Shown one piece after another: positions 28,531 through 39,269 of a stretch of 64,000 nt of DNA. The stretch is taken from NCBI GenBank assembly GCA_004431415.1, contig QPMI01000247.1, forward strand, positions 1 to 64,000, in the 5' to 3' direction. The DNA comes from Cyanophora paradoxa CCMP329. Taxonomy: Eukaryota; Plantae; Glaucophyta. Position numbers and translations under genes: made by a program. The notes under the pieces are model-generated. The model did not search any database, was not told the DNA's origin, and was given only the letters and a program-made list of their open reading frames with translations. The first letter of the stretch is position 1; every line of letters starts with the position of its first letter.

Positions 28531-31500
28531 TCAGGTGCCGCCGGCGCCAACGTAGGTGGGGTAGTCCGTGAAGGACCGGCAGAACTGCGTCCCCTCCGCG
28601 CTCCTCGAGAGGAGGCAGTAGACACCCGGGTCGGCGCTGCAGCTGATGATCTCGCCCCCGGCGTTCCGCTGGCCCGTGCAGCCGTACGAGTAGCACGCCC
28701 CCGTGACCGTCTCCCACGAGTAGACCGGGAAGCCCCTGCCCGCAGCCGGGGACGGTCAGATCTAGATCCGGAGGGGTCTGGACGATCTAGACAGATCTGC
28801 CGACGTCGCGCACGCGATCTGGTTGAAGGTGCCGTCCTCGCGGAACGCCGTCCCGCACGTACCGTACCTGCGCGTGCGCGTGTCGGCACGGGCCGCGCGC
28901 GCGGCGAAGGGCAGCGCTGCGCTGGCGGCAGGGGGCGCGGGCACCTGGCCGTGTCGAAGGTGCCGAGGGACGTGAGAGTGCCGAGCGTGCTGTCGCTTGC
29001 AGCTGCGCGCGGGGACGTCCCCTCAGCGGTCGCGCAACGGGCTTACAATCAGAAGCTTAAGGGCCGAGCGAGCGCCGCGGGCGCACCGCTGCAGCCGAGG
29101 CCGGGCTCGGACCACGTGAAGGACCCGACGGCGGCCTGGAAGGCCTTCTCGGCGCAGGCGGCGAGCGAGGCCGCCGTGAGGGGCTCCGTCTCCGACGCCG
29201 TCAGCCGCACGGGGTAGAGGGCGAGCGAGGTGGAGTCGGAGACGGTGCCCAGGGCCGACGGCTCGGTGTAGACGAGGCGCTCCCGGACGAAGCAGCCGAG
29301 GTACCGCGCCGTGTAGCACGTCGTCGTCAGGACCACCTCGTTGGCCACCGGCGACCCCGTGCCCGAGCCCGAGCCCGAGCCGCTGCCGCTGCCCGAGCCC
29401 GAGCCGGAGCCCGAGCCGCTGCCCGAGCCCGAGCCCGAGCCCGAGCCGGATCCACTGCCCGAGCCCGAGCCCGAGCCGGTGCAGTTGGAAGGCCCGAGGT
29501 ACGCTGCGCGCGGAGCGGAGCGGGCCGGGGCCGGCGTCAGCGGGATCGAAGTTCGGGATCGAAGAAAGAAGAAATCAAATCGGCGGACACGCGGGACCCG
29601 AGTAGACGTCCACGGTTCTACGGGGACGGGAGCGCATCAGTCCTAGATCTTCATGCGCATGCGCATGCATGTGGGCCTCGCACAGCGGGTTGGAGGCCGT
29701 GCCGCAGCCGACGCTGGAGGCGGCCGGCCCGAGGGTCTGCACGCTAGAGAAACTCCCGTCCGGCGTCGCGACGCACGTCGCCCCGTTGGTGATCCCGTAG
29801 TACCTGGCCCCGGCCCCGGCCGCGGCCCCGCCGCCCTGTCACAGGCCGAAGCAGGTCGCGATCGGGCGTGTCGGCCGGCAGCGCGGGCACCGCATGTAGG
29901 GGTTGTCCGCCCCGCCCCCAGAGGAAACGGAGGTGTAGACGAGCTTGCGGCACTCGGTGATGTTGGACGCGGTGGAGAGGGTCACGACCCAGAGCATCTG
30001 CCGGCGGCGCGCGGGCGGGCGGGCGCGCCGTCAGAGGGCTCCAGCTCGAGCTCGCGATCGCGATCGCGATCGGCCGGCGACGCCGTCGGCCCGCGGGCCA
30101 CGAACCTCGTCGACCGGCTCGGCGGTGGCGGATGACTTGTAGCACCCAACGTGCGTGAAGGACTCCCACGGGTCGACGCAGGGCGCGGTGGGCACCGCCG
30201 GCACGGTCGGGTCGGTCGGGTACGTCGGCACGGTCGGGTCGGTGGGGATGGTCGGGAGGCCCGTGCCGGGATCGATGCCGCCGGAGCCACTGCCGCTTCC
30301 GCTGCCACTGCCGCTGCCGCTTCCGCTGCCGGAGCTGCTGCCTGTGCCGGGGATCCCTCCGAGGCCCGGGTCGGGGATGGTGGGCGGCTCGATGCGGGGC
30401 GGGATGGCCGGCTTCTTCGGCGCGTAGTAGTACTCCTGCGCCTGCTGCTGCGCCAGGATCGCCTCCTCCAGCGACTGCCGGAAGTTCCCGTGCTGCGGGG
30501 GAGAAGAAAGCCCGCCGGTGCGAGTACACATCCAACGATTCCGGTCACAGCTCGGCCCAAGAAAGGCCCGGGCGGGGCCGGCGGGCTCGGGCGCGCACCT
30601 TGAATGGGACGTACTTGCTCGAGGAGGAGTCGCACTCGTTGCCGGAGCAGACCTTCTCGCAGCGGAGGCCGCCGCGGCCCGCCGGGCAGTAGCACGCCCC
30701 CGTGATCTGGTCGCACACGCCCTGGCCCGAGCAGTCGCATGCTGTGTGCGAAATCGAATTTCGAAAATGGTCAAAAGCTGCAGGACATGCGCAGCGCGGC
30801 AGACAGCGGGGGCTGGCGCGCGGACCCTGGCACTGCAGGTCGGAGGCGCGCAGGAAGAAGCCCTCCTCGCACTTCTCGCAGAAGGTGCCGACGTACTTGC
30901 CGCTGCAGACGCAGGCCTGCGTGGCGCTGTCGAAGGTGCCCCGGCCCGAGCAGTCGTTCGCCGGCGCCTGCACGCTCGCTGCGCACACGCAATCGCAAGA
31001 CGCGAGACGCCTCAACCTCAGAACTGACAGTGACGAAATTTAAAGATCGGGGCGGGGGCACCGCAGGGGTCGGAGGGGGAGCTGGGGCCGGAGTACTGGA
31101 GGCTCTCGTCGGCGGAGATGGCGCGGGCGACGACGGCGCAAGCCGCCCGCACGACCGTCTCCGGCGAGAGGTCGTAGTACTTCCTGCCCGCCCCGCCCCC
31201 GCCGGCATCCGAAATCACGGCGGAATCCCGCGGGCGCGGGGGAGCGCATGCGCACAGCTCGGTGACGTATTCGACGTTGGAGGGGAAGTTGACGGAGGTC
31301 TGGACGCGGGTCTGGCCCGGAGGATAGTAGACGAAGGCGACCTGCCGCCCGTCGTCGCTGACGAGCGGCAGCACCGGCAGGCGCGCGTTGGCCCCGTTCG
31401 AGCGGTAGTCGCCCCCGAAGGGGACCGTCCGCGCCGCGATGAGAGGGCGCTCCGCCTCCAGGTCGACGATCTGTAGCGTCGTCGCCGTCTGCCACACCGC

Positions 31501-37500: not shown

Positions 37501-39269
37501 CGCGGGTCGGACGCAAAGAAGGCGAAACGAGAGATCTTTGGATCGGGTCGGGTTGGGGAGGGGCCGGCGCACGCGGATGTACTTGACCTGGTCCTCCGTC
37601 GCCTTGATGTGCGTCTTCGAGTCCTCGATCTGCACGCGCGGGCGGCGCGCGCCGGCGTTCAACTCGGCTCCGGCGCCGGCGGGCCGACGGGGGCTCTAGG
37701 CCCAGGCCCAGGGCCGCCAGGGCCGACCTTCTCGAGCCAGTTCTCGGCGTCGACGAGCTCGTGTCCGGAGAGCAGCTTGTCCGAGCGCGGCTTTCTGCAG
37801 GGGCCGCCGCCGGCCGGCGCCGTCAGCCCGCGCCGCGGGAGAAGAAGAGAAGAGAGGAGGGAAAGGACGCACGACCCGGCATCGATCCACTCGCGCGCCT
37901 TGACGAGCTGCGACGCGATCACGGCGCAGGTGAGGGGCGATTTCTACAAGTGCTTTGCGCGGGACGGGGCGGGGGGGCGGACGAGGCGGGTGTGGGTGCG
38001 CTGGGACTCCATGTCGGTTCGGAGGACGCTCTCGATGGACTTGAACGCCACCTCGAACTGGCCCGGCGCCGTCATCGGGATCCAGTTGATGCTCGACAGC
38101 ACCTGCGGGGCGGGGAAGAAGAAGTCAGGAGGGAGGGAGGGGGGGGGGGGGGGGGGGGGTAGGACCTCGGGGACGCCCTCCGTGGTGCGGACGAGGACGG
38201 GGACCATCTTCTTCTTGTTCTCCACGGCCAGGTCCAGCCTGCGCGAGCGCGCGCCCCGGCGTCGCCCGCGCGGCCCGGCGGGGCGGGGCGGGAGGGCGGG
38301 AGGGCGGACTCGGCCTGGCACTCGGGGGAGCTGGCCCAGTCGGGGGAGAGGAGGAAGACGGCGGCGTCCGAGCACTCCACCCCCGACGCGATCTCTGCCC
38401 GCCAGTCTGCGCCCCGCCGCCGTCGGGGCTTGCCCCGCGGGGTCTGGCGGGGGGAGGGCGGGCGGGCCGACCTGTCCCAGGGGGGATGTCTTCCCTGAAA
38501 GGGAGTGGGGGGGGGGGGGGGGGGGAGGATGCAGGGGTCAGATTGTTTTCAGCGCAGGCGGCCGTGCCTTCGCTCTCGCGCACCAGTCAACCTGCGGAGC
38601 GCGGCGCGAGCGAGTGAGCGCGGGCGGGCCGGGGCGTGCCAGGGCGGGCGGGGCCCGGGGCCGCCCCGCGGGGGTGGGCGGACCCAGATGTCGAAGCCGG
38701 CGCCCTCGAGGGCCGTCACGAGCTGCCGCGCCGCCGCCGTGTCCCGCCGCGAGTACGAGAGCATGCTGCCCGGCCGCCGCGTCAAGGCGGGGTTGGGAGG
38801 GCGGGGCGGCGGCGCTGGGGCGGCGCTGGCGGGCGCGTCGCACAAGTCGTGGTGCCCGCCCAGGCCCTTGCTCGCCGCGCCCTTCTTTGCCGCCTGGACG
38901 TTCCCCGGGCCCCGCTGGCCCGCCGGCGCGCTGGCCGAGCTCGGGTGCATGTGCATCACCGCGACCTTCACGTCGCTCGCGACCGGCGACGGGCCCCGGG
39001 GCGCTGGCGCCGGGGACGGGCCGCGGGGCGCCGGCGCGGGGCCGCTTCCGGGGTGCAGATGGATAGTCGTGCCCTCCGCCGCCGGCGCCGGCGCTTCATC
39101 TGCGGACGCGACGCCGCGGCGTACGCGTCAGCTGCAACGCCAACCGCGCCGGCGAGGATTCGGAGGTGCGGCGCATGCGCCGCCTGCTGGGCGCACCGAG
39201 CGAGGCCGGCTGCTTTGGGTCGGCATCTCCGGGCCAGAAACTGCTCCACAGCTTCACCGCGCTCTGCAT
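28531..39269 (-). CDS. TIR domain - helical linker - single TM - WD40/beta-propeller - EGF-like x2 - WSC-like x2 protein (candidate TIR receptor; many introns)
   Basis: Likely ATG at 39269 (MQSAVKLW). TIR_2: [93 protein letters not shown]. Linker: [76 protein letters not shown]-like [77 protein letters not shown] and [29 protein letters not shown]-like [21 protein letters not shown] and YLGCF. Stop TGA at 28531. Confidence 0.82.
29362..29478 (-). repeat. Coding (Gly-Ser)n linker between WSC-like modules; a second GS run at ~30283-30340
   Basis: cccgag hexamer array on the + strand reads GSGSGS on the - strand. Confidence 0.9.

Follow-up and report, generated by a model that had tools for sequence, protein, structure and literature searches.

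The freshwater glaucophyte Cyanophora paradoxa CCMP329 appears to encode a membrane receptor in which a bacterial type of TIR domain faces the cytosol and a long modular region faces outwards. Its gene lies on the minus strand at positions 39269 to 28531 of a stretch of 64,000 nucleotides (nt) from contig QPMI01000247.1 (positions 1 to 64,000), which is referred to here as the window. The inner half of the predicted protein, which comprises the TIR domain, a three-helix linker, and a single transmembrane (TM) helix, is very probably of bacterial origin, and the same arrangement is found in a large family of bacterial proteins. The best overall explanation, to which we assign a probability of roughly one half, is a receptor that is clustered by its ligand and cuts NAD+ as an alarm or death signal.

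The region 27000-40500 was read on the minus strand and exon limits were set by hand. As an earlier note on this DNA had proposed, a single open frame runs through the interval: from an ATG at 39269 to a TGA ending at 28531, 46 exons are joined with no stop or frameshift, and all 45 introns are of the GT/GC-AG type (38 GT and 7 GC donors; 44 CAG acceptors and one TAG). GC3 (the G+C content at third codon positions) is maximal in the model's frame for 45 of the 46 exons and lies at ~0.9-1.0 in all except two micro-exons, and a leave-one-out splice test ranked the chosen site best within 40 nt for 36 of 45 donors and 37 of 45 acceptors. Introns are short (55-306 nt, median 78), the longest being located within the TM helix; since those past the TM helix do not exceed 216 nt, compared with flanking intergenic gaps of ~740 and ~1,130 nt (the latter with 46% GC), a gene boundary has little room inside the locus. 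In addition, two micro-exons supply a W-x-D-W-E-D-I-x-P-G stretch gap-free, which provides an independent check of the exon model. A paralogue was found in the Cyanophora paradoxa protein set of EukProt, where the search with exon 34 returned one relative with 47% identity over 108 amino acids (aa). The annotation gives this relative as a gene of 130 aa whose end lies a few residues beyond the point matching the exon 34 donor; this end supports that boundary and suggests that public gene models break up at least one paralogue of the TIR gene. Read in this way from the genomic sequence, the interval 39269-28531 in all likelihood holds a single intact gene. The GC donors (16% of the introns) all lie from intron 15 onward, with none in the first 14.

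Profile and database searches used translated exons one at a time, and the joined translation served only for frame, hydropathy, charge, and motif counts. Exon 3 matches positions 2-28 of the Pfam TIR_2 profile (E 2e-4) and exon 6 matches positions 40-69 (E 1e-3), in order; with the domain divided among small exons, neither match reaches the curated cut-off. PADLOC and NCBIfam gave nothing beyond generic TIR matches. The search with exon 8 yielded one true relative, P0004, a tandem-TIR, intron-free, and bacterial-looking protein; P0001 (a repetitive lipoprotein and the top match), P0002, P0003, and P0005 were set aside as matches due to repeats or chance. A family was gathered starting from P0004, and profiles were built for TIR plus linker and for a longer version through the TM helix. 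The algal exons fall in order on the TIR-plus-linker profile, with exon 3 at positions 6-31, exon 5 at 36-40, exon 6 at 44-72, exon 7 at 75-94, exon 8 at 102-142, exon 9 at 143-150, exon 10 at 156-173, and exon 11 at 180-192, so that the linker (exons 8-11), which is the hallmark of the bacterial family, matches positions 102-192. Exons 3, 6, 7, 8, and 10 score 12-22 bits, exons 5, 9, and 11 are in their ordered place with low scores, and the remaining exons reach at most 0.2 bits. On the longer profile, exons 3, 6, 7, 8, and 10 score 6-23 bits, compared with at most 0.8 for 2,819 background pieces, and hhalign gives an E value of 1e-6 for exon 8. The N-terminal TIR_2 domain recognized in the earlier note is thus confirmed by Pfam and by the ordered match to the bacterial profile.

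AlphaFold models the bacterial unit as a TIR fold followed by three helices (predicted local distance difference test, pLDDT, 97). Its TIR matches the structures of Hydra TRR-2 (top, Z 19.5), SPARTA, AbTir, SARM1, and MyD88, a comparison in which the linker was barely tested, and its nearest solved sequence relative is the NADase (NAD+-cleaving enzyme) Cat1. The whole unit matches Atlas clusters of five bacterial phyla, mostly with WD40 arrays; in the gathered proteins it occurs in Cyanobacteriota, Chloroflexota, Pseudomonadota, Actinomycetota, Acidobacteriota, Bacteroidota, and Verrucomicrobiota, together with WD40, CHASE2, TPR, ankyrin, FGE, or BNR domains. Each of 129 bacterial proteins carries one to six copies, the last of which is followed by a TM helix in 116, and 88% of the TM-bearing relatives are, as in the alga, more basic before the TM helix than after it. 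Members with the order TIR(n)-linker-TM-WD40 from Allocoleopsis franciscana, Leptolyngbya sp. PCC 7376, Parabeggiatoa, Chloroflexota, and soil metagenomes are annotated as 'TIR domain-containing' or 'WD40 repeat protein', and our literature searches, for which most subscription papers were outside reach, found no description of the bacterial TIR-WD40 family. The algal protein shares with these members a TIR that passes directly into an H-T-R-L...W...L-L-x-G...A-E-x-W-L linker, the catalytic Glu, and one TM helix with a basic flank; the stalk of helices and the propeller-type sequence that come next in the bacterial members probably have counterparts in the alga. Only the alga has 45 introns, a low-complexity N-terminal arm, and an insert with an RRRLQ motif, and its tail of EGF, Gly-Ser, and Cys modules was not seen in the bacterial members examined; moreover, its propeller-like sequence is highly degenerate over ~1,100 aa, in contrast to the 7-14 clean blades of full-length bacterial members (up to 14 in ~600 aa). 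To call the gene a new system, as the earlier note did, was therefore an overstatement, the TIR-linker-TM frame being that of a large bacterial family.

With regard to the donor, per-exon score sums are similar for cyanobacterial relatives (328-338) and unassigned soil-metagenome relatives (331-334), so that they single out no donor lineage and neither demonstrate nor exclude a plastid-derived transfer. The S-x-E-C-x-x-E form of the catalytic motif, shared with several soil-metagenome relatives, may be a hint of a non-cyanobacterial donor. One soil-metagenome contig (L061:468-7859) contains three consecutive TIR genes, two of which are TIR-linker-TM-WD40; in the middle one, Gln-Phe-Val-Arg-Trp-Glu in helix C replaces the family Cys motif, and this gene is the best single match to exon 3. 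Some bacterial members adjoin other TIR, SLATT, LSDAT, or NADAR genes. At L080:12228-16536 and L078:14325-16826, cyanobacteria-type members lie just ahead of either SLATT_3 plus LSDAT genes or NADAR plus vWA genes, neighbourhoods that could hint at an ADP-ribose-linked conflict context.

CHASE2 is an extracytoplasmic sensor domain, and its position past the TM helix in bacterial relatives fixes an N-in/C-out topology. In the algal protein, the sole hydrophobic segment has a hydropathy (Kyte-Doolittle, 19 residues) of 3.24 at aa 312, the runner-up reaching 1.56, and the joined protein has no N-terminal hydrophobic segment and no signal peptide. Given the one TM helix, the missing signal peptide, the charge bias, and the paired-Cys EGF modules in the C-terminal part, we are confident of a type II topology, with the TIR domain in the cytosol and the C-terminal part outside, either at the cell surface or in a vesicle lumen. 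N-glycosylation sequons were dropped as topology evidence, as they are not enriched (9 seen vs 7.3 expected). The 309-aa cytosolic part is fully occupied by arm, TIR, and linker, with no NB-ARC, NACHT, or nSTAND nucleoside triphosphatase between TIR and sensor, so the protein is not a nucleotide-binding leucine-rich-repeat receptor (NLR) or an Avs protein; no leucine-rich repeat (LRR) was matched on the algal exons scanned with Pfam. Here the sequence analysis supports the earlier note in its claims of one TM helix after KLKK, a missing signal peptide, a type II protein with a cytosolic Glu-bearing TIR oriented oppositely to animal Toll-like receptors (TLRs), and no LRR or NB-ARC.

The active site of Cat1 (S7, D33, S68, and E74) corresponds, when mapped via P0004, to S113, D139, S174, and E180 of the algal TIR, and all four checked positions are retained. 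In Cat1, D33, S68, and E74 are among the residues required, S7 lines the pocket, and the site lies between two TIR domains (PMC12162218). Sites of TIR NADases are formed by a pair of TIR domains. The Glu column is conserved in 301 of 316 bacterial units; in the alga, as noted earlier from the sequence, the Glu180 codon (GA/G) in SPECQAEL is interrupted by an intron, at 38309-38239. The position four before the catalytic Glu (E-4) is Glu176 in the algal TIR rather than an aromatic residue; it is Y or F in 275 of 316 bacterial units, the closest-scoring units being mostly without an aromatic, and it is aromatic in Cat1, AbTir, and SARM1 (those checked). Since all cyclase TIRs have an aromatic residue there (W-x-x-x-E; 10.1101/2022.05.07.491051), the production of cyclic ADP-ribose (cADPR) isomers, which the earlier note had raised, is unlikely, and the product, if any, would more likely be linear ADP-ribose made by plain NAD+ hydrolysis. 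From these residues, the balance tilts slightly towards the TIR being an active NADase.

The outer part begins with a stalk, for which exons 14 and 15 score 6.4 and 8.5 bits on the stalk profile versus a background of 5.2; an S-R-x-L-A...L-A-L-L-L cap, split across exons 15 and 16, was seen by eye, and the cap profile alone does not rise above background. The spacing from the cap to the first blade motif is 125 aa in the alga versus 63-69 in bacteria. Beyond it, the WD40-like repeats of the earlier note hold in part: exon 24 holds the only clear WD40 blade (at 33808-33903; 19.6 bits; Pfam E 0.0015-0.013), exon 16 is a weak match, and the rest comes down to six degenerate S-P-D-G-type blade-turn motifs scattered over ~1,050 aa. 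The propeller match of exon 34 is weak and below threshold, a single-sequence fold of exon 17 was unusable (pLDDT 34), and no relatives of exon 16 were found in the protein collection, Atlas, or metagenomes, a blank that is uninformative given the length limit of the protein search. This region of ~1,100 aa probably represents degenerate beta-propellers with inserts, by descent from the bacterial propeller, in which many WD40 blades would be interrupted by introns.

Both laminin-EGF modules of the earlier note (exons 37 and 38) exceed the curated cut-off of Pfam EGF_laminin (PF00053), although the first appears to have lost its C1-C3 pair, and the Pro and Gly-Ser linkers that it listed are present as two tethers. 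Its WSC-like modules stand as a resemblance by eye. The two Cys modules have, like the WSC domains (PAN/apple) of fungal Wsc1 and Kremen1, a G-C-[YF] start, a helix Cys in T-x-C, a G-x-A-x-S-x-x-C segment, and a V-Y end; unlike them, they miss half of the cysteines (four each vs eight in Wsc1) and the CGG motif, and there is no Pfam match even at E 10 (searched exon-wise, each module spanning 3-5 exons). In a by-eye alignment to the Wsc1 pattern (PMC9024836), the cysteines are lost as complete disulfide pairs, and those retained would likewise make up the complete pairs C1-C6 and C2-C4, so a reduced WSC/PAN-like fold fits. A single WSC domain has no obvious glycan pocket and the Kremen1 WSC binds protein (PMC9024836); together with the Cys count and the missing CGG motif, this leaves glycan sensing, as proposed in the earlier note, an unsupported guess. 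The coordinates of all parts are given in Table 1.

Table 1. Parts of the predicted TIR receptor gene, with positions in the window.
Feature	Position	Strand	Basis
Whole gene model, 46 exons, 2,185 aa	28531..39269	-	Open frame, GT/GC-AG introns, GC3, splice-site ranking
Pro/Ala-rich low-complexity N-terminal arm, aa 1-108, without signal peptide	38849..39269	-	Sequence; no Pfam match
TIR domain, aa 109-236, exons 2-8	38007..38848	-	Pfam, bacterial profile, hhalign
8-nt micro-exon with Asp139 (Cat1 D33 equivalent)	38584..38591	-	Fills bacterial W-x-D-W gap-free
23-nt micro-exon, BB loop (E-D-I-P-P-G)	38472..38494	-	Gene model, bacterial profile
Catalytic Glu180 codon, split GA/G by intron 6	38238..38311	-	Gene model; bacterial column Glu
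Three-helix linker from TIR to membrane, aa 237-303	37458..38006	-	Exons 8-11 ordered on profile; AlphaFold of bacterial relative
KLKK, basic cytosolic flank of TM helix	37446..37457	-	Sequence; net charge +5 before, +1 after
Single TM helix, aa ~310-333, exons 12-14	36971..37439	-	Hydropathy
Helical coiled-coil-like stalk and cap, aa 334-412	36582..36970	-	Stalk profile
Insert of ~60 aa relative to bacterial relatives, with two N-glycosylation sequons and RRRLQ	36303..36581	-	Spacing comparison
Strand-rich region, aa ~506-1600	31156..36302	-	One clear WD40 blade, weak leads, motif counts
Laminin-type EGF module 1, 6 Cys	30830..30967	-	Pfam EGF_laminin 24.3 bits, cut-off 21
Laminin-type EGF module 2, 8 Cys	30632..30739	-	Pfam EGF_laminin 22.2 bits, cut-off 21
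Pro-rich and Gly-Ser tether	30181..30420	-	Sequence
Cys module 1, WSC/PAN-like by eye, 4/8 Cys plus flanking pair	29481..30180	-	Sequence; no Pfam match
(Gly-Ser)n tether, ~44 aa	29349..29480	-	Sequence
Cys module 2, same four-Cys pattern	28720..29318	-	Sequence; no Pfam or PDB match
Cys-rich C-terminal tail and stop codon	28531..28719	-	Sequence, Pfam scan

Compared with known TIR proteins, the algal protein has the TIR fold and active-site residues in common with Cat1, SPARTA TIR-APAZ, AbTir, and SARM1. These four reside inside the cell, either in soluble form or tethered, and their sensors are CARF, APAZ, coiled-coil, or ARM-SAM modules. As in animal Toll-like and IL-1 (interleukin-1) receptors and Hydra TRR-2, one TM helix joins an outer sensor to a cytosolic TIR; in contrast to the animal receptors, the algal protein is of type II, lacks a signal peptide and LRR or Ig domains, has a catalytic-type TIR, and has an independent bacterial ancestry. 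It resembles a Toll receptor turned around with a putative enzyme inside, yet it is no TLR. What the algal gene contributes is the combination of a single TIR, an apparently intact frame, a tip of EGF, tether, and Cys modules, the E-4 prediction, and the RRRLQ insert. In agreement with the earlier note, no such architecture was found described for Cyanophora or glaucophytes in the literature searched.

In the mechanism that we favour, the ancestor would have been a bacterial TIR-linker-TM-propeller protein that gained introns and was extended in the alga. The outer part (stalk, propellers, EGF spacers, tethers, and Cys modules) would bind something at the cell surface or in the vesicle lumen, probably a microbe or a product of damage. 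Binding would cluster receptors via the stalk, and the single TIRs of separate chains might then meet to form a shared active site, which would split NAD+ by hydrolysis; nicotinamide and linear ADP-ribose would be the products, and the reaction would serve as an alarm or cell-death signal. The outer modules and TIR number vary in the family, as they would for a recognition repertoire, and a defence role of the algal receptor seems to us an even prospect. The parts and the topology are read from the sequence; binding, NADase activity, and the immune role are what we infer. Several points weigh against this mechanism: the gene structure is taken from genomic sequence only, the propeller is hardly detectable, no ligand-binding module is securely identified in the outer part, a catalytic Glu does not guarantee NADase activity, and TIRs without an aromatic E-4 include inactive ones (10.1101/2022.05.07.491051). 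Moreover, bacterial neighbourhoods show no fixed partner gene, and no assay of any bacterial family member was found in the literature searched.

The same protein and topology might instead serve adhesion, cell contact, or mechanical sensing, with the tethered Cys modules as an anchor from which strain passes inward as in Wsc1, and the TIR as a scaffold or low-level signalling enzyme. A tip in which small Cys modules are held by tethers of Gly-Ser and Pro-rich sequence does recall Wsc-type mechanosensors, bacterial relatives carry general sensory domains such as CHASE2, and the scaffold TIRs of MyD88, MAL, and Hydra TRR-2 score structurally as well as enzymes do; retention of all four checked active-site positions speaks against it, and we regard such a sensor as unlikely. 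Quite improbable, in our judgement, is a two-chain receptor gated by cleavage, which would be cut at RRRLQ (aa 467-471; 36405-36419) in the secretory pathway, the outer subunit being loosely held or shed and its release acting as the switch. The motif, a possible candidate site for a convertase or site-1 protease, fits the site-1 consensus RXXL/RXLX (PMC11062432) and lies between stalk and first blade in an insert missing from bacterial relatives, and the neighbouring plus-strand gene (~21500-27395) also has an RRRLAQ motif, near 26780. RRRL arises in 4% of shuffles, but the motif is short and was spotted post hoc; cleavage would also be compatible with a receptor clustered by its ligand and may merely refine that explanation.

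It is also conceivable that the model joins too much: the locus would make a shorter TIR-TM-stalk protein, and what follows would belong to another gene, stem from intron retention, or be a relic in decay. The public annotation, in which a paralogous exon appears as a 130-aa gene of its own, would fit, as would the few splice sites that are not the best local candidate. However, that public model stops immediately beyond the corresponding exon boundary and looks like a mis-annotation, and the absence of stops and frameshifts, the high GC3, and the short introns after the TM helix relative to the intergenic gaps all argue for one gene. Furthermore, a downstream gene would have no second hydrophobic segment as its signal peptide, and TIR, TM helix, stalk, and propeller form a single chain in the bacterial relatives. 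An over-joined model is accordingly rather improbable, and we retain the ligand-clustered, NAD+-cutting receptor as the preferred explanation.

Glaucophytes are an early branch of the plant supergroup. No immune receptors of glaucophytes were found in the literature searched, nor any description of a Cyanophora or glaucophyte TIR protein, most subscription papers being outside reach; fragmented public gene models may explain why the algal family was overlooked. To our knowledge, cell-surface TIR receptors are so far of type I and non-enzymatic, and those that act as enzymes mostly reside inside the cell; a type II receptor whose TIR is of the catalytic type unites the two ideas. A broader proposal, which we put forward tentatively, is that glaucophytes turned a whole bacterial TM-TIR sensor into a family of surface immune receptors of their own, enzymatic and reverse-oriented analogues of Toll in which eukaryotic tip modules (EGF and WSC-like ones in the present gene) are exchanged on a bacterial frame and NAD+ is destroyed directly upon microbe sensing. 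If true, TIR immunity coupled to receptors would have arisen independently in the plant supergroup, and the algal proteins would offer a first functional way into the large bacterial TIR-linker-TM family, which is so far unstudied.

The TIR gene is flanked upstream by an intron-rich P-type ATPase gene on the minus strand (40009-46500), which ends ~740 nt before the TIR gene ATG and has DKTGT and flippase-like motifs (P4 type by eye) and an E1-E2_ATPase match on one exon. The plus-strand neighbour mentioned above is convergent and lies downstream; its product has a large outer region that is rich in Pro, Ser, and Thr and contains Cys, with no Pfam match on the four outer exons tried. A TM helix, after which come a Cys cluster and a basic run, lies at 27213-27330 and may belong to the same gene. 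Short palindromic runs of the AGATCT/TCTAGA type are abundant in introns and intergenic DNA of the window (for example, at 39660-39900, 28400-28470, and 27420-27520), and an additional EGF-like piece resembling exon 38 is present on the minus strand at 63134-63199.

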